Positions 10,769 to 64,000 of a stretch of 64,000 nucleotides of DNA are shown here, one piece after another. Made by a program: the position numbers and the translations under genes. The notes below the pieces were generated by a model. It was not told the origin of the DNA and made no database searches. It saw only the letters and a program-made list of their open reading frames with translations. Source of the stretch: Corallochytrium limacisporum Hawaii (taxonomy: Eukaryota > Protista > Pluriformea); NCBI GenBank assembly GCA_002811645.1, contig PDIP01000048.1:1-64000 (forward strand), given 5' to 3'. How positions within the stretch are numbered: position 1 is the stretch's first letter; every line of letters begins with the position of its first letter.

Positions 10769-10851
10769 TGGTGAGAGTGGGATTCGAACCCACGCCTCCG
10801 GAGAGACTGCGACCTTAACGCAGCGCCTTAGACCAACTCGGCCATCTCACC
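10769..10851 (-). tRNA. tRNA-Leu, anticodon AAG (read as IAG)
   Basis: The reverse complement folds as a cloverleaf: acceptor GGTGAGA/TCTCACC, D-arm TGGCCGAGTTGGTCTAAGG, anticodon arm CTGCG-TTAAGGT-CGCAG, long variable arm, T-loop GTTCGAATC. A poly-T terminator lies downstream (A-run 10751-10762) and a TATA-like tract ~30 nt upstream. Confidence 0.97.
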
Positions 10852-52835: not shown

Positions 52836-53498
52836 ATGACCATCATGCCCGGTAACGAGAAGCGTAAGCCCGTAGTTCTCCTGACTGGTTTCGGACCTTT
52901 CAACGAGTACAAGGAGAACCCGTCCTGGGACTACATCAACGAACGGATCGTCAAGAAGGTCGACAATGTTCTTAGTGACATCTGCGAAGTCCATTGCAAG
53001 GAGCTGGTGGTCAGCTACGAGCACTGCGCAACCAACACCCCTCGTCTGCAGCATGAACTTAAGCCAGATATTACCATCCACACCGGTGTAGCCCTGCCAA
53101 ACCAGTTCGCCGTGGAGAACAAATGTCGCAACGGACCCTTTGACAAGCCCGATCACTACAAGGACATGCGTGAGAGTCACAAGGTTGTCCCGGAGCTGGA
53201 TATCGACCATCACTACATGTGCCGCATGAACCTGCCCAAGATTGTGGAGGATGCAAGCCTCAAGATCAAGAAGACCATCCACACCAAGGACCCGGTGGTC
53301 TTCAAGGTATCCAACGATGCGGGTCTCTACCTGTGCGAGTACAACTATTTCCTGTCCAGTCACGCCCGCCAGCAGCCTGTGGTCTTCTTCCACATCCCGC
53401 CCTTCAACGAGCCCTGGACTAAGGAGGAGATCTTCGACACCTGCGACGTGATCGTCAAGACCATCGTTGAGGACTGCATTAAGCAGTTCTCTTTGTAA
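52836..53498 (+). CDS. PGPEP1: Pyroglutamyl-peptidase I (peptidase C15)
   Basis: 'LLTGFGPF', 'NPSW', 'IHTGV...VE', 'SNDAGLYLCEYNYF' and 'FFHIP'. Glu-Cys-His triad present. Confidence 0.93.
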   Translation: MTIMPGNEKRKPVVLLTGFGPFNEYKENPSWDYINERIVKKVDNVLSDICEVHCKELVVSYEHCATNTPRLQHELKPDITIHTGVALPNQFAVENKCRNGPFDKPDHYKDMRESHKVVPELDIDHHYMCRMNLPKIVEDASLKIKKTIHTKDPVVFKVSNDAGLYLCEYNYFLSSHARQQPVVFFHIPPFNEPWTKEEIFDTCDVIVKTIVEDCIKQFSL

Positions 53499-53917
53499 TC
53501 CCCCCCCATTAAACCCCCTGTTCCTTTTTTATCTTCCTTCCGTATCATCCATGAACCGTGCATGCTTGTTAGCTCTGACATGCAGAACAGATCACCTTCC
53601 TGCGGTGCGCACTCTTGCTGCATAGCGATCGAACGGATCACCTTCCAACACCGGTCCGCTTCCCCTGGTCAGGTCCTTTCTCTTGAATGAGGAGGAAGGG
53701 AGAAAAAGGAAGAGGGGGGGTGTTGCTCTCTAGTTCTCTCTATAAATAGAGCACAGGCTAACACCAATACGCACATCGTCCATAGATTAGCCACCTCGCT
53801 CAGGTCCTTCAGGGCCGCCTACATTGGCTCACTGTGGTCCACGAGAATGTGTGTGGCAATCGCTTCTTTACTTGTACGTCGGACTTGGTGCAAATTAAGG
53901 CCTGGGAACGGACGGAA

Positions 53918-54958
53918 ATGTCAACGGCTGCCATCGTCGACGCCCTGCTCTTCGGGCGGGTTGCTAAGCAGGTGCCGAAGGTGGTGCAGGACATAGTGAC
54001 CGGCACCGCCCGCATCACTACGCTGCAGGAATGGAAGCAAGTATACCAGTCGCGAATCTGTCCGGAGATCTCGCTGTCTATTCTAAGATCACTGGTGGCG
54101 GGATATGCAAGCGATCGCATGGCATGGGTATTCTCATCTGGCTACCAAGGCGCATTAATTTGGCACCTAAGGGCAAGAATACCGGAGGAGACGCAGTTGT
54201 TAAAGTCTCTGGAAACCAAGATTATGTGCTTTAGTGTGAATGAGAAAGACGTTAAGAACCCTAAAACCATGGGCACAGTGCTCACTGCCCAAGGTGATGG
54301 GTTTTTTATCAATGGCAGCAAATCCTGGGTGACACTCGGAGAGATGTGCGAGGTCATGCTGATCGCAGCCGGATATGGCGACGCAAGTCCTGATGGGAAG
54401 CGTAAACTGAAGCTCTGCGTGGTCCCCACGGCGGATGCAACTGGTATTACCTTGAACCTGAAGAAACCAACTCCGTTTACTCCTGAGATGCCTCACTCCG
54501 CCGCAGTACTTGAGAATGTATCCGTGCCTTCGGCCATGGTCTTCCCGCCGGGAGACAAAGACGGTTACGAAAGCTACGTCCGATGTTTCGGACCAGCCGA
54601 GGATGTCCATGTCATGATGGCGTTGACAGGCTACTGGTTGTCCATCGCCAACGGTCCGCTGAAGGGATCCGTGGACGCGACCATGCGCGCCGGCTGGATC
54701 TCCGAACTGGGCTGTGCTGTATCCATGGCACAGTGCCTGACTGACGTGGCCAACGGTGTGGATGCCGATTCGAACGCCGGACGTCTCATCCTGCACACTC
54801 TCTGCGAACGTGTCGTGAAAGTTCGATCGGCCATAGCGGAAGAGCTCAAGAAGGTGGACAAGGAATGGTACGAGCGGGAAAAGAGGGATGAGCCCCTTGT
54901 TCTGTTGCCAGCCAAAATGCGAAAAGCCCGGTTCGAGAGTTTGGCTGCGAAACTTTAA
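53918..54958 (+). CDS. Acyl-CoA dehydrogenase-like protein, bacterial-like, PTS1 C-terminus AKL
   Basis: 'WVFSSGYQGAL', 'CFSVNE', 'INGSKSWVT', 'PEMPH' and 'AEDVHV'. First ATG at 53918. TATAAA at 53741. Confidence 0.78.
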   Translation: MSTAAIVDALLFGRVAKQVPKVVQDIVTGTARITTLQEWKQVYQSRICPEISLSILRSLVAGYASDRMAWVFSSGYQGALIWHLRARIPEETQLLKSLETKIMCFSVNEKDVKNPKTMGTVLTAQGDGFFINGSKSWVTLGEMCEVMLIAAGYGDASPDGKRKLKLCVVPTADATGITLNLKKPTPFTPEMPHSAAVLENVSVPSAMVFPPGDKDGYESYVRCFGPAEDVHVMMALTGYWLSIANGPLKGSVDATMRAGWISELGCAVSMAQCLTDVANGVDADSNAGRLILHTLCERVVKVRSAIAEELKKVDKEWYEREKRDEPLVLLPAKMRKARFESLAAKL

Positions 54959-55122: not shown

Positions 55123-56265
55123 TCAGAAGGAGATCTTATCACCGACCTGTTCATCCTCCACAATCGACGCCGGTTGCGACTGCAACAGGGAATACTGTCG
55201 CAGTAACTGACATTCACCTCCCTCTTGCGAGTCCAGAGCGTAGGTGTAGAAATAGCCCTCATTAGTGATCACCATGACCGTAGGGCTGGAGTTTGATATT
55301 GCACATATGCTCTTGAGTCCGGTCTTGGGAAGCTTAACGTGCGCGAAGTGACGCACTGGCTCCCAGATTTCCGTGAGCATCTCCGGAAGATAGGAACTAA
55401 GATACTCTGTGGTGTTTCCGAGACCAAGATAGTTCTGATTCGGGCTGACTTTCTTGATAGCCGACCCTTCAGACACTCCAGAACCCCCTGATCCGTCCTC
55501 GATTTTGAAAATGTGGATCGTGTCCGTGTCCGAGCTCACGCAGAGGAATTTGCCGGTCACACTGAAAGCGATCGAATAGATCGTGGCTGGTTTTGTACCC
55601 CTCCGGAACTGGAATAGTTTCTTGGAGTCTGGTACACTAAAGATCCGAATGATCGTTCCTTTGTCGCTGGCTGTGGCAATCATCGTCCCTGACTGGTTGA
55701 AGGCAATACAGCGTACGGGTGACTTGTGGGCCTGCAGCACGTTCACCGCTTGAATGCTCCGCACGTCAAAAATTAGCAATTCTCCCGTGTTGGCATTTGC
55801 GGGATAGGCCAGGAAGTTATTGTCCTGGTCCGGGCTTAATGCGACAATGCCAGCCTTGTTGAGCGTAGTCTGAAGTGTGTGCAGGAGGTTCATTGTGTTA
55901 ATGTCGTAAATGTAAATTTTGTCCTCCAACACCACTATCAGTCGTTTCCGATTCAACTTGACGCAAAGAATTGTGTTGGAGAAGTTAAGCTGACAGATTA
56001 CCGTGTTGCGTTTCGTGTTCGCGACCTGCAGTACGCGAGGCGACCTGTCGACTTTGTGCCCTCCGCCGACCTGAGCAACCAGACTGGTGCAGAAGAGCAT
56101 TTCAATGATACCCGTGTCCCCACATTCCTTGGTGTAGCCCTTGTTAAAGGGGTCACAGTTGTAAATGTGATAGCCAGTACTCGTACCCACCGATACGCAG
56201 CTGTAGTCCTGGTTGAAGTTCGCAAACAGGAACTGACTGCCGTCATCTAGCGAACTGACATTCAT
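55123..56265 (-). CDS. ATG18: PROPPIN autophagy protein Atg18/WIPI
   Basis: 'NFNQD', 'IEMLFCTSLVA', 'ATASDKGTIIRIF', lipid-binding 'FRRG' and 'SSDTDTIHIFK'. Confidence 0.96.
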   Translation of the reverse strand: MNVSSLDDGSQFLFANFNQDYSCVSVGTSTGYHIYNCDPFNKGYTKECGDTGIIEMLFCTSLVAQVGGGHKVDRSPRVLQVANTKRNTVICQLNFSNTILCVKLNRKRLIVVLEDKIYIYDINTMNLLHTLQTTLNKAGIVALSPDQDNNFLAYPANANTGELLIFDVRSIQAVNVLQAHKSPVRCIAFNQSGTMIATASDKGTIIRIFSVPDSKKLFQFRRGTKPATIYSIAFSVTGKFLCVSSDTDTIHIFKIEDGSGGSGVSEGSAIKKVSPNQNYLGLGNTTEYLSSYLPEMLTEIWEPVRHFAHVKLPKTGLKSICAISNSSPTVMVITNEGYFYTYALDSQEGGECQLLRQYSLLQSQPASIVEDEQVGDKISF

Positions 56266-57643: not shown

Positions 57644-58701
57644 AAAAAAAAAACGGGGGGGAAAGGGGGGGGGGGGGGGGGGGGGAGCTGGTGAGTACCC
57701 ATACCCACTCGTATACGGTAGGGCACGGGTACGGTGTCAAAAAAAAGAAAATCACGGGAAACGCAAGACTCCGCACAGTTTTTTCTTTTGGAGCGCGATC
57801 GGTGTCCCAGTGGCAAAACCTGAACTGGCTGCCCAAGAGGGGGGGGGGGAGAGGAAGTGCAGTCACGCCCGGTACTGAGAGTACTGCCGTTCTACCCTGC
57901 CAGAGTGGGTTTGGGACGGGGGGGAGGGAGGGAGGGAGGGAGAACTGCCCCCGTGATCGGAGCCTGTTTGTACGCGAACAAACCAGCGAACACTTTCTCG
58001 GTATATTCACTATTTGGAGAGAAGGGGGGATGCGGAAGCTTCGGGCGAAGGGGAGGTTGGCGGAGGGGGAGAGAGGAGAGCCAGACAGAGAGGCGAATTA
58101 GCGGGATGACGATAACAGAAAATCTTTACCGCCTGCTTCCATCTCGGGTCGGTTGGTCCACTATGGGCTCAGCAGTCACAACAGCGAGCGTCAGCCCATC
58201 AGGAGGCGATTCCCAGCTGGGTCCCCCCGCGGGGAGGGCCAAAGAGGGCCCAAGAAAAAAGCCATACGATGGTGGGTGGACTGGTGGTGGCGGTTACGTT
58301 TTTGTGTTTTTTGTTCCGATTCACCCACCACACCAGCACGGACGGCCCCAAGAGATGATGGCAAACCGGGATGGAACCTGCGTCTTGTTGCTGCAGGCCA
58401 GTGATATCGAAGAGGATCTTTCGTTACATTTTCTTTTGTGCTTGTATGTTTTGTCAATTTTGACGTGGTAAGTTCGACATGGGTTTTCTTTCCTTTTCCA
58501 GGTGCTTGTGTTTTCGTTTTGTTTTTGTATTGCCTTGTTTATTCTAGATCATTTGCAAATATTGGGGGTATATCAGAGAGTCAATCTATATTAATTTACA
58601 GACGTTCATATTGCTCATCAATTGACCAACGTGGGCAATTCGTGTACATATAGAGCAGGGGTCGCATACTTAGGTAAGCACTCTTGCGCGTGTATATAGC
58701 C

Positions 58702-61700
58702 ATGGAGGATACAATGGATATGGATGAGGCAAAGTCGCCTACCATCACATACACAAAGACAGAAGCTCCTGAGTCCGAGTACGATTCAGAAGTGAAGGAA
58801 CGCGGACAGATTAAATGGAAGATCCCGAAGGAATATTTTGAAGCCACAGGGCCCCGCAAGCAGTATTCGGACCGAGTAGTGATCGATGAGGAAGGATGGC
58901 GCTTTCTGCTATTCCCCCGCGGAAATGATGCCCAGGCCAACACTGCCCAGGCCTACGTGAGCCTTTACTTAGACTTTGCAGACGCCGACACGCTGGCCCC
59001 CGGCTGGCAGAAGACCGTGAACTTTAAGTTGACCATCATTAGCACCAAGGGACCAACATACAATGCCTCTAAAGACGCAAACCACCGCTTTTTCATCGAC
59101 GAACGGGATTGGGGTTTCACTCAGTTCATGCCCTGGGAGGAACTCACGGATACAAGCCGAGGTTATTTCCATACTGACGAAGAAACGGGCCAGCAGTACG
59201 TTCTTTTGGAGGCTGATCTCTTGATCTACCATGACTACTCAAACTATGATTCGAAGAAGGCCACGGGATATGTCGGACTGAAGAACCAAGGGGCCACATG
59301 TTACATGAACAGTCTCCTACAGACCTTCTTCTTGACGCACAAGCTTCGGAGGGCAGTCTACAGCATGCCGACGGTCAAAGATGATGCGGATAAGAGTGTG
59401 CCTCTGGCCCTCCAGCGGGTATTTTTCCAATTGCAGAGCGGTAATCAGGCCGTGGGCACGATGGACCTGACTCGTAGTTTCGGATGGGATACTATGGATA
59501 CCTTTCTGCAGCGTGACGTGCAAGAATTTTCCCGTGTGTTGTGTAGTCATTTGGAGACAAAGCTGAAGGGTACGGAAGTCGAGACATTGATCAGCGATCT
59601 GTTTGAGGGCAAGATGAAATCTTACATTCGGTGCATTAATGTCGACTTCACCTCGGAACGAAGTGAAGCTTTCTTTGACATTCCTTTGAACGTCAAAGGC
59701 ATCAAGACACTAACAGATAGCTTCAAGGACTATGTCCAGGAAGAGACTCTGGATGGTGAGAACAAGTACCAGGCTGAGGGCCACGGTCTGCAGGATGCTA
59801 AGAAAGGTGTGATCTTTGAACGGTACCCTCCAGTCCTACATATTCAGCTCAAGCGTTTTGATTACGATATGGAGAAGGATATGACGGTAAAGATCAATGA
59901 CCGCTTCGAATTCCCTGCGGAGGTAAACCTCGACGACTTTTTGGAGAACCCGGACGCGAGTGATCCAAGTGACTACGTCCTGCACGCAGTCCTTGTGCAC
60001 TCTGGCGATTTACACGGAGGCCATTACGTTGTCTACATCAAGCCCGAATTGGAGGGTACTTGGCTAAAGTTTGATGACGACCGGGTGGTTAAGGTAAGTC
60101 CCAAGGAAGCATTAGACGACAACTTTGGACAGGATCCACCCTCTGAGAACGGAAACGATGCGAACAAGCACCTCAGGTTTGGCGTTCGGACGGCTCGAAG
60201 GTTTACAAACGCCTATATGTTGGTCTACGTGCGCAAGAGCAAGTTTGCCGAGCTCATGAAGCCTGTTGCCGATGAGGAGATTCCGGACCAGCTTGTCGAG
60301 CGTTTCAAACGCGAGGATGAGGAAGAAGCCAGACTGGAAGAAGAACGCCGTAATGCACATCTGTTCCTGAAGGTCCAAGTGGCCACCGACGACGAAATTG
60401 CGATGAATCATCGGGACGATTTGATTCCATGGAGGGATGAAAGCGTAACCGATCGCATCATCAACATGAAGGTCAGGCGGGACGAGACCCTGGGTAACTT
60501 GCGCCCGCAGATTGCAAAGGAACTGAATCTGGCCGTTGATGAGTTCAGATTGTGGGTGTTTGTGAACCGCATGAACAAAACTGTGCGTCCGGACAACTGT
60601 CTAACTGAGGACGAGAATGAGAAACAAGTCGAGATGCTGAGCCAGAAGCAGAACCCGTGGAAACTGTACGTTGAGAGACTCAACAATAAGGAAGCCACCA
60701 AGGAACAAGACAGCTCTGCTGTCAGCGAAAGCTTCCTGATCTTTTTTAAATTCTACGACCCCGTTAACGAGCAATTGAGCTATGCAGGTCATTCTCTTTG
60801 CAACCAAAATTCCACGGTCGCGGATCTGTTCCCGCAGATGCGTACTCTGGCCAACCTGCCCGAGTCTACGCCTCTGGCGGTTTACGAGGAGGTCAAGCCG
60901 CAAATGATCGAGCCATGCGGGCCTGATCGCACTCTTCGGGAATGTGAGCTGCAGAATGGTGATATCCTGGTCTTTATGAAGGACAAGGATGGCATGGACA
61001 TGGATGAAAACGGAGCCACGGCGACCGGATCGGGAGCCAATGTGCGTCTCCCAGATCCTCCGGCGTTCTTTGAGGACCTCGGTTTACGGATAAAGGTCAC
61101 GTTCAAGGAACTCAACACGGATGCCAACACCAAGGAATCGAAGGACTTTGAGCTGGAGCTGTCTAAAGCAATGGATTACAAGACAGTTGCTACGGCCGTG
61201 TCGCGACACCTTGGTCTAGACAGCGATCAGATCCAAATTACTGGTTACAGCTATGTCCATGACCGACCGATGCATACCTTCCCTAGGGACAGCATGCTGA
61301 ATTTGGATCAGATGCTTAAGGCAGGCAACGAATCCTACTCGACCTACGGCAACGGCAGGGCCCAGACGCTCTACTACAATGCACTGCACACTAATTTCGG
61401 AGGTGATACACTGATGATCAGGCTGGACTACTTGAACGCAAAACTAGACAACCAGCGGGTGAACCTTGTGATGAGCGGCAAGAACACTGTCGAAAACTTG
61501 CTGACTAAAATGAAAGAGAATCTGTCGGACAACTCGGACGAGCTGCAGTTGCGCCTGGTCTTGGTGCAGAACTACACAATTGTCAAGGTCTTCGACCTCA
61601 ACGAGCAATTGGAGCCTGTCCAGAAAGAAGCAGATGACTGTCGAGCGACCATGCGAGTCGAGGAGATTCCGAAGGAAGAGAGCCAGAGAATGGAAGGTTC

Positions 61701-62028
61701 CATTGTGGTGCAGTGCATCCACTACGACAAGAACCCGAGCCAGCGCCACGGTGTGCCATTCTACCTGTCCATTGGAAAGGACGAAATGTGGAATTCAGTG
61801 CGGAAGAGGATCCAGGGTAATCTGAAGCTCTCCGAGAAGGTGTTCAATACGTACACTTTGACCAAAGTAGATTTGAAACAGGACCGTCGCAGTGTGATCA
61901 CTCAACTGCCAAAAGACGATTTTGTAGCGCAAGAGGAGTTCCAGGACGGCCAGGCCATCGGTCTTGACCATATCAACCGTGGCTACCGGTCATCTGGATA
62001 CGACAAACCGATTACGATCAAGGAATAG
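58702..62028 (+). CDS. USP7: Ubiquitin carboxyl-terminal hydrolase 7 (MATH + USP + UBL domains)
   Basis: MATH 'WRFLLFPRGN...DWGFTQFM', Cys box 'GYVGLKNQGATCYMNSLLQ', His box 'VLVHSGDLHGGHYV', C-terminal 'IGLDH...ITIK'. gccATGg at 58702. Confidence 0.97.
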   Translation: MEDTMDMDEAKSPTITYTKTEAPESEYDSEVKERGQIKWKIPKEYFEATGPRKQYSDRVVIDEEGWRFLLFPRGNDAQANTAQAYVSLYLDFADADTLAPGWQKTVNFKLTIISTKGPTYNASKDANHRFFIDERDWGFTQFMPWEELTDTSRGYFHTDEETGQQYVLLEADLLIYHDYSNYDSKKATGYVGLKNQGATCYMNSLLQTFFLTHKLRRAVYSMPTVKDDADKSVPLALQRVFFQLQSGNQAVGTMDLTRSFGWDTMDTFLQRDVQEFSRVLCSHLETKLKGTEVETLISDLFEGKMKSYIRCINVDFTSERSEAFFDIPLNVKGIKTLTDSFKDYVQEETLDGENKYQAEGHGLQDAKKGVIFERYPPVLHIQLKRFDYDMEKDMTVKINDRFEFPAEVNLDDFLENPDASDPSDYVLHAVLVHSGDLHGGHYVVYIKPELEGTWLKFDDDRVVKVSPKEALDDNFGQDPPSENGNDANKHLRFGVRTARRFTNAYMLVYVRKSKFAELMKPVADEEIPDQLVERFKREDEEEARLEEERRNAHLFLKVQVATDDEIAMNHRDDLIPWRDESVTDRIINMKVRRDETLGNLRPQIAKELNLAVDEFRLWVFVNRMNKTVRPDNCLTEDENEKQVEMLSQKQNPWKLYVERLNNKEATKEQDSSAVSESFLIFFKFYDPVNEQLSYAGHSLCNQNSTVADLFPQMRTLANLPESTPLAVYEEVKPQMIEPCGPDRTLRECELQNGDILVFMKDKDGMDMDENGATATGSGANVRLPDPPAFFEDLGLRIKVTFKELNTDANTKESKDFELELSKAMDYKTVATAVSRHLGLDSDQIQITGYSYVHDRPMHTFPRDSMLNLDQMLKAGNESYSTYGNGRAQTLYYNALHTNFGGDTLMIRLDYLNAKLDNQRVNLVMSGKNTVENLLTKMKENLSDNSDELQLRLVLVQNYTIVKVFDLNEQLEPVQKEADDCRATMRVEEIPKEESQRMEGSIVVQCIHYDKNPSQRHGVPFYLSIGKDEMWNSVRKRIQGNLKLSEKVFNTYTLTKVDLKQDRRSVITQLPKDDFVAQEEFQDGQAIGLDHINRGYRSSGYDKPITIKE

Positions 62029-62969
62029 GGCTCAAAGTTCATCGAACAACTCGTCTCCATTCCGTAAGCAAACGAGCATGAACCCCACGCAGCATTTTTC
62101 GACGGGCGATTTACATCATCATCTTGTAACTAAACTGACAGCCACCACCAAAACATCCTTTCTACTGAATTTTTTATTGATGATCTGTTTTGTTCTCATT
62201 CTCCTTACATAATTTTTCTGTGAAAGTAAAAAACCCGCTTGCCTTCCTGTTGTAGTTCTTTATTTTCCATTACCGTCCTCGGCCAGTTGTGCGTTTCGCT
62301 TAAATAAAATGGTCGTCCGCACTCTGTTTTCTCATTTCTCCTTCCAAAATGGCACCACCAACTACCAATTAGGAATTTAATAAAGGTCCGTATAATAGAT
62401 TCCTCTTTAGTATAATGAGAAGGTACATTTTACAAATATTCGGTATATATTTATTAACATCTGGCACACGACTGCGAGACCATGCGAGACAGGGTTTCGG
62501 AGAGACAGTAAATCTATTGGCACAGGCTTCAGCCAAGGGAAGCCAGAACAAAAAGCCCCTCACATTCCAAGGGTCCCGGTGCTGAACCGTGTACCCGCGT
62601 AGATTGCGTCAGAATAGCCGGATATATCCAATACGCGGCCCCGCCCGTTTTTCCTTTCGGTGTGCGGCTGGAGCCGAATCGAGAAAGTCTCGGCCTCGCA
62701 TCAGCTGATTTTGCGGTATACCACCATTCGGTATGTGAGGGGAGGGGCGGGAGGGGCGATTCCATAGGGTTGGGGGTGAGCTCCGACAGGACACAGTGAC
62801 GGACCACAGAAGATTCCCTCACCGCTGCGATGCTCATGTTCATGTTCTGTGGGCCGGTGAAGCTACTTATGCGACACTTCCCGAGCACAACATCGAAGCC
62901 AAAAGTTTTTTTCCGTAAACGATTACGTTTGCTCCGGGATAGTTGTTCACACAGCAGGCCAGAGCAATC

Positions 62970-63542
62970 ATGCCCATCGAGGGTACGTTTGAGTTGGACA
63001 CCGAGGTCCTTGACCTCGAAAACAGCTCCATTAAACTTGGTGACATTCTTGCCCAGTCCCAGAGCGAGGCTACTGTCCTCGTTCTGATTCGCCGTTTCGG
63101 CTGAGCCTACTGCCACCACCAGGCCACGATGATCCTGTCGGGCCGCACCGAGCTTGACCAACTTGGTGCTCAGGTGGTGGGTATTGGCAATGGCAGCGTC
63201 CTGTTTGCCAACAGCTTCAAGAAGAATACGAAATGGGACTATCCAGTTTACCGCGATCCCAAGTCTGCGGTATACAAGAGCATTGGCCTGCCTCGCCTCA
63301 GTGTTTGGCAGGCTCTGTCGCGATTCCTTTTCAACAGTGCTGCGCGGGCATTCTACAATGGCACTCTGTCAAAGGAGCACCCTTCCTCTGATTACAAGGG
63401 TGACGGTCAGCAGACCGGTGGTGTTTTCGTTGTGAATAAGGCGGGTGAGTTCACCTTCGCCTTCAAGGAGCACGAAAATCCTCCAGAGAAATTTGCAGAT
63501 GTGCAAGACATCATCGCAGCGGTAAGGAAGATGAACAAGTAG
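62970..63542 (+). CDS. Selenoprotein of the SelU/PRXL2 (AhpC-TSA-like, thioredoxin fold) family, 190 aa with Sec at codon 45
   Basis: ATG 62970 is in frame with the tracked ORF 63129-63542, separated only by TGA 63102-63104 within 'VLVLIRRFG-U-AYC'. Downstream family motifs 'VVGIG', 'VYRDP...VYKSIGL' and 'GDGQQTGGVFVV'. Confidence 0.88.
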
Positions 63543-63876
63543 ACAAGACAGATCAGGATCTCACTTCCATATTGGTTGTTGTAGTCCTGTCCAATGAACC
63601 TAATGAGTTGTCATGTATCTCCGAACTGGAAGCGAAGAAAGACAAACATCAGCATCGCTGCTCCCAACCATACCTTAACCACACCGAACGCAACATGAAC
63701 GGCAACGTAGCAGAAGCTGGGAATGAGAACAACGAGGAACACAAACAGGGTTACGACACATCCTCTGCAGAGCAAAACGGATATGACCAGGTACGTGAGA
63801 CGAATAATAATTTGAGAAGAAAGTGGTGTTCATGCGTAGTCGAACTGGTGGCCAGGCTTCCACCAACTGACAGCAA

Positions 63877-63924
63877 ATGACGGAGCACGCCAAAATCCTG
63901 AAACGGAGGCGTTGCGATCCTGAT
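63877..63924 (+). promoter_or_regulatory. Type II SECIS element candidate
   Basis: ATGA-C-GGAGCACGCC-AAAA-TCC-TGAAAC-GGA-GGCG-T-TGC-GA-TCC-TGAT. This gives a UGAN/NGAN quartet, a 10-bp helix II, unpaired As 11 nt after ATGA, and an apical mini-stem. Helix I is weak. Confidence 0.75.
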
Positions 63925-64000
63925 ATCTAACGAAGGATACAGAGGGATAGAAACTGTTCTGCGACAGTGGTCCAAGGTTTGGTCACCTTGGCTCCCATCC

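Follow-up and report, generated by a model that had tools for sequence, protein, structure and literature searches.

A PRXL2B-like gene with a predicted selenocysteine codon, and tRNA genes with T-loop introns, in Corallochytrium limacisporum

Does the TGA that interrupts an AhpC-TSA_2 reading frame in Corallochytrium limacisporum end a gene, or does it specify selenocysteine (Sec)? The locus lies close to the end of the 64,000-nucleotide stretch of one contig that was analysed (referred to here as the window), in a genome of 24.1 Mb and 286 contigs with few introns. No literature linking C. limacisporum with selenoproteins was found. The evidence described below indicates that the locus is, in all likelihood, a functional selenoprotein gene of eukaryotic type that belongs to the Prx-like2/AhpC-TSA_2 group, with PRXL2B as its closest known relative. 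It would be a selenoprotein of the ordinary kind; the unusual biology is found in tRNA genes on other contigs (Table 1).

Table 1. Features of the selenoprotein locus, its neighbors, and related genes elsewhere in the genome. Positions given without a contig are window positions. BHB, bulge-helix-bulge.
Feature	Location	Strand	Description
Full CDS	62970..63542	+	190 codons/aa, intronless; AhpC-TSA_2 (PF13911) thioredoxin-fold protein, PRXL2B/SelU3-like
N-terminal 44 codons absent from annotation	62970..63101	+	RRFG motif at end; homology to Cys forms
In-frame TGA, inferred selenocysteine 45	63102..63104	+	Aligned with Cys44, the catalytic residue in human PGFS
TGC, Cys48, second residue of UxxC	63111..63113	+	Equals Cys47 of human PGFS; invariant in family alignment
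Internal ATG (Met54)	63129..63131	+	Taken as start by ORF track and public model
3' UTR, ~640 nt in total	63543..64000	+	Continues beyond window; AATAAA at contig position 64161
Form II SECIS	63877-63924	+	AUGAC/UGAU core, tandem G.A pairs; found with own pattern
USP7-like protease	58684-62028		Intronless neighbor
Atg18/WIPI-like protein	55123-56265	-	Intronless neighbor
Acyl-CoA dehydrogenase-like protein	53834-54958		Intronless neighbor
Pyroglutamyl peptidase	52836-53498		Intronless neighbor
SPS2	L015 (C14)		In-frame UGA at active site
SelW	L019 (C54)		In-frame UGA at active site
Second Rdx gene	L018 (C234)		
tRNA-Sec, sole gene	G000:C110:371719-371866 (L001:1501-1648)		56-nt BHB intron at 59/60 in T-loop; genomic CCA
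tRNA-Leu(CAA)	L029 (C15)		T-loop 59/60 BHB intron (23-52 nt across this and the next six genes)
tRNA-Ser(CGA)	L032 (C33)		T-loop 59/60 BHB intron
tRNA-Arg(ACG)	L067 (C273)		T-loop 59/60 BHB intron
tRNA-Gly(TCC)	L117 (C11)		T-loop 59/60 BHB intron
tRNA-Gly(GCC), first	L118 (C4)		T-loop 59/60 BHB intron
tRNA-Gly(GCC), second	L119 (C88)		T-loop 59/60 BHB intron
tRNA-Cys(GCA)	L115 (C44)		T-loop 59/60 BHB intron
tRNA-Ala(CGC), circularly permuted	G000:C242:178108-178010 (L116)	-	3' half, 26-nt spacer, 5' half, poly-T
tRNA endonuclease subunits (two catalytic, one Sen54-like)	G000:C122:130320, C181:136325, C248:52727		

The reading frame and its TGA codon

No other ATG lies between an in-frame TAG at 62940 and the ATG at 62970 (context caatcATG). 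As described in the initial annotation, the frame that opens there is interrupted by a single internal stop, the TGA at codon 45; it comprises 190 codons and terminates in a TAG (63540-63542). The TGA stands in the context RRFG-stop-AYCHHQ, which corresponds to RRFG-U-AY-C. Both the mechanical ORF and public protein model P0001 (eukprot; 137 aa) begin at 63129, downstream of the UxxC motif, and standard annotation therefore does remove the active site. The 44 residues before the TGA were homologous to Cys forms of the family (BLASTP E 3e-8 versus P0054; HMM E 4e-6). The flanks were searched as separate pieces, with the UGA represented by X in scripts and by C for the tree; both flanks aligned, the alignment ran unbroken through the TGA codon, and the HMM score was 178 bits for the read-through protein with X compared to 136 bits for the annotated piece.

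Of 153 relatives collected, 43 span the TGA column and 110 stop short, many of them starting just behind the TGA. The read-through alignment proposed at the outset placed the UGA in a column occupied by Cys in 42 of the 43 spanning relatives. When the DNA of 11 truncated relatives was read, TGA was present at exactly the same codon in 10 (RRFG-stop-xxC), and neither TAA nor TAG was seen there; relative P0017 (L123) was omitted, as its motif is not in frame. Sec and Cys forms were interleaved in a quick tree, and a Cys relative with TGT was found side by side with a Sec form to which it is 62% identical. In soil relatives L012, L013, and L130, Sec and Cys forms alike, the PRXL2 domain is preceded by a long N-terminal extension.

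The TGA is covered by one DNA contig, possibly the assembly source itself, and by contigs of two RNA-type runs from separate samples and studies, "RNA" being the type guessed by the tool. At the contig level, all three data sets read TGA, with no alternative letters, gaps, or joints at the codon. A TGC or TGT misread as TGA, or a codon spliced out of the RNA, had been named from the start as a way in which the Sec reading could fail; given these contigs and the continuous alignment across the codon, the probability that a sequencing error or an intron accounts for the TGA is negligible.

The RNA-type contigs are empty over intergenic positions 62144-62976, consistent with an RNA origin. They start at 62977 and 63002, just within the frame, and extend beyond the window; because they begin inside the frame, the start codon is uncovered, and such contigs cannot show a start. 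The longer contig ends near 64182, 16 bases past the AATAAA, and the next long ORF begins ∼1.8 kb beyond the transcript end, which together give the length of the 3' UTR. A short ORF with a GT-like site (63572-63880) was considered as the next gene and rejected, since no splice was seen in the RNA-type contigs, and this region was assigned to the UTR. At the contig level, the gene is transcribed.

A pseudogene or nonsense allele, in which a Cys codon has become TGA and the locus is either inactive or yields the 137-aa piece alone, would need one base change (TGC or TGT to TGA) and would agree with the Met54 start of the public model. However, the same TGA is found in the 10 diverged relatives, the locus is present once in the genome and has no further lesion, coverage in the RNA-type runs is deep, a SECIS element lies downstream, and the 137-aa piece would be left without the redox motif. 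The pseudogene reading is thus largely refuted, and we consider it highly improbable.

SECIS element and selenocysteine machinery

The SECIS element was located with a pattern of our own, defined by an RUGA/GA core, helix II, and an unpaired AA, and was the sole strict match on both strands of the window (128 kb). It starts 335 nt past the stop and falls inside the RNA-type contigs. Helix II has 10 bp with bulges, followed by an unpaired AAAA (63892-63895) and a 3-bp apical mini-stem (-13 kcal/mol), and helix I is weakly defined. The pattern matched 10 of 2,000 dinucleotide shuffles of the UTR, and for the initial 150 nt of the UTR, folding was no better than that of shuffles. The same pattern located an element behind the SPS2 gene of this genome and gave no match downstream of either eEFSec or the Cys-form Rdx gene. 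Six of the 10 relatives with TGA had a SECIS-like hairpin in their short UTR (per-case shuffle rate, 0.5 to 7.5%). Rfam SECIS_1 gave no match at the region or across the genome; this blank is uninformative, because the model misses the SPS2 element too. For the SelW gene of this genome, a strict SECIS was not found by our pattern, and a long candidate lies at L019:1852-1924.

A working Sec pathway, which the Sec reading presupposes, is represented in the genome. SecS (482 aa; E 3e-111), eEFSec (565 aa; domain III, E 2e-27), SPS2 (itself carrying an in-frame UGA and a SECIS), and a single tRNA-Sec gene were clear. Candidates were found for a PSTK-like kinase, with a score below the curated cut-off, and for an SBP2-like protein of 502 aa with a C-terminal L7Ae domain, below or outside the curated cut-offs. 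At the level of gene content, this shows an organism that uses selenocysteine. A second candidate tRNA-Sec (L002) was rejected; it encodes tRNA-Ser(UGA), and the contig on which it lies is rich in tRNA genes and probably mitochondrial. The second Rdx gene has Cys in place of Sec and resembles bacterial SelW-like proteins. In a second AhpC-like gene (L006; G000:C241:42400-43100), a UxxC motif (GDW-U-PYC) likewise includes an in-frame UGA, and the C-terminal tail of the product is hydrophobic.

UGA is reassigned in some protists, and a changed code or leaky read-through could have it decoded as Cys or Trp without Sec. Against this, TGA ends 11 of the 21 long ORFs of the window, more than any other stop, which argues that the code is not reassigned, and the sole UCA tRNA found has the Sec structure, with tRNA-Trp being CCA; decoding as Cys or Trp is very unlikely. 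From the conservation of the TGA, its equivalence to Cys, the SECIS, and the Sec machinery, we infer that Sec is almost certainly inserted at UGA 45.

Family placement and proposed redox mechanism

The piece after the TGA matched PF13911 (AhpC-TSA_2) with 70.5 bits (cut-off, 27). A profile of the Cys relatives matched human PGFS (PRXL2B) with an E value of 1e-41 and with RRFGC in register. A structural model of Cys relative P0012 (pLDDT 92) has a thioredoxin fold, with the motif at residues 39 to 42 and the helix starting at residue 40; its best structural match was PGFS (E 4e-12), in a PDB search that returned no PRXL2A or PRXL2C chain for comparison. The C-terminal piece compared directly with human PGFS gave a weak match (E 0.006). 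In the quick tree, which contains no animal PRXL2A, PRXL2C, or SelL references, the protein groups with protist sequences, those of Capsaspora and Vitrella among them, in a clade of 26 rows (SH-aLRT 94) that is sister (support 99) to a clade with an animal PGFS-named sequence.

SelU1/PRXL2A (of fish, birds, and algae) and SelL belong to the same Pfam family and also have Sec first in the motif. PRXL2A carries RRPG, and SelL combines RHFG with UxxU, whereas the protein described here has RRFG with UxxC. The SelL motif UxxU is absent, codon 48 being TGC, and the NCBIfam SelL-related model NF040769 scored the C-terminal piece at 50.6 against a cut-off of 120 (full Cys relatives, 51 to 69). The SelU/PRXL2-type identity given in the initial annotation holds at the level of the PRXL2 family, and the subfamily appears to be PRXL2B/SelU3-like rather than SelU1. 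By sequence, the protein looks closest to PRXL2B (SelU3, prostamide/PGF synthase).

It is also conceivable that the Sec assignment is right and that the protein belongs to a separate protist Prx-like2 clade with another substrate, for example protein disulfides, and is not a PRXL2B orthologue. The protist clade does stand apart from the animal PGFS-named clade, and the weak direct match between the C-terminal piece and human PGFS is consistent with such a separation. However, the two clades are sisters, RRFG-C/U is common to both, and PGFS is the best match by structure and by profile. We regard a separate clade as a serious possibility, somewhat short of even. A PRXL2B-like protein is the reading adopted here.

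In PGFS, Cys44 attacks the PGH2 peroxide, Arg40 and Arg41 make the site positive, and the motif cycles via a disulfide (PMC12938796). By analogy, a similar redox cycle is likely for the C. limacisporum protein. Translation would start from the ATG at 62970; at UGA 45, the 3' UTR SECIS, bound by the SBP2-like protein, would recruit eEFSec with Sec-tRNA, and the product would be a 190-aa protein in which UxxC opens the first long helix of the thioredoxin fold. The Sec45 selenolate, activated by the two preceding arginines, would attack the substrate at a peroxide or disulfide; Cys48 would then resolve the Sec45 adduct, forming a selenenyl-sulfide that would be re-reduced by the NADPH/thioredoxin system. 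Most likely, the protein would act in the cytosol to reduce lipid or organic (endo)peroxides, with a lipid peroxide as the substrate being a tentative guess from analogy with PGFS. No functional tie was seen between the selenoprotein and the four intronless neighbors.

PRXL2B/FAM213B/SelU3 (PDB 9us9 and 9usa; PMC12938796) shares with the protein described here the thioredoxin-like fold, RRFG, the second Cys, and a GD..Q.GG motif. Human PRXL2B differs in having Cys at the attacking position, where Sec is predicted here, identity is ∼25% for the modeled relative, and the C. limacisporum protein occupies the separate protist branch of the quick tree. Sec forms have been published for SelU3/PGFS in invertebrates and for SelU in algae (Jiang et al. 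2012, PMC3473315), and the gene thus adds a member to a known selenoprotein group. With the invertebrate Sec-form SelU3 (PMC3473315), it has in common Sec in the SelU3/PGFS lineage and a 3' UTR SECIS, a likeness drawn without sequence-by-sequence comparison; the carriers here are a unicellular holozoan and environmental eukaryotes. Sec-form PRXL2B-like proteins would thereby extend from invertebrates to protists, and the natural Sec/Cys pairs lend themselves to comparison of catalysis. The analysis also corrects the public protein model, from which the entire active site is absent, and many database entries of the family, among the 110 relatives that do not span the motif, are similarly cut.

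tRNA genes with T-loop introns and a permuted tRNA gene

The insertion in the tRNA-Sec gene is framed by a strict BHB motif, and once it is excised at 59/60, the T-loop re-forms along with a T-stem of 4 bp and an acceptor of 9 bp, and ARAGORN calls tRNA-SeC. Among the seven other genes with a T-loop intron, those for Arg and Gly(TCC) have a BHB whose outer helix is relaxed. Genome pattern counts found no intronless copy of the Gly, Cys, or Arg(ACG) tRNAs in this incomplete assembly. For this reason, the organism very probably splices T-loop introns, and the main doubt on tRNA-Sec is thereby removed. A loose genome pattern for more T-loop introns gave matches at chance level. Genes for the Tyr, Ile(UAU), Leu(UAA), Ser(UGA), Val(CAC), and Gly(CCC) tRNAs were looked for among the nuclear contigs' tRNA genes by sight of those recovered and were missing from them. 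Metagenome scans for tRNA-Sec and tRNA-Gly with T-loop introns gave no match, with one pattern's gap being 1 base short even for the gene of this genome.

The permuted tRNA-Ala(CGC) is the sole copy found. Its halves form a perfect cloverleaf when rejoined and none in genomic order; its leader and trailer pair, with a BHB-like junction in the D-loop, and the exact cut is uncertain by 1 to 2 nt. Three tRNA endonuclease subunits were identified (Table 1), and no Sen15 was found over the cut-off in the genome; Sen15 has been reported missing in C. merolae too. tRNA-Thr(CGT) (L114; G000:C257:40830-40955) has a canonical intron, and its first two acceptor pairs are mismatched, which may reflect an extra intron, editing, or a pseudogene. 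The window itself has an ordinary intronless tRNA-Leu(AAG) (10769-10851, minus strand).

A review lists holozoan tRNA introns at 37/38 alone (PMC10485636). In reviews, T-loop introns and permuted tRNA genes are recorded solely from archaea, from red and green algae, and from nucleomorphs, and permuted tRNA genes from algae, nucleomorphs, and one archaeon only. No report of either feature in holozoans was found in the literature, our coverage of which is incomplete. Should the organism process these T-loop introns and the permuted tRNA, they would represent an exception, in a culturable organism, to the rule that opisthokont endonucleases act at 37/38 only, and standard tRNA finders would miss genes in such genomes. 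We consider it reasonably likely that a protist-wide PRXL2B-like branch alternates between Sec and Cys and that, in C. limacisporum, its Sec codon is decoded by a tRNA-Sec spliced at a T-loop BHB intron by an endonuclease that would also act on the permuted tRNA-Ala(CGC) and on no fewer than seven further T-loop introns, which would amount to archaeal-style tRNA processing in an organism closely related to animals. Two known systems come close, namely the T-loop intron of Lokiarchaeota tRNA-Sec (PMC4989117) and the ectopic introns and permuted tRNAs of C. merolae (PMC4090602, PMC3978253). The features in common are a BHB intron in the T-loop and a permuted gene with a D-loop junction; the genes described here differ in being nuclear genes of a holozoan.
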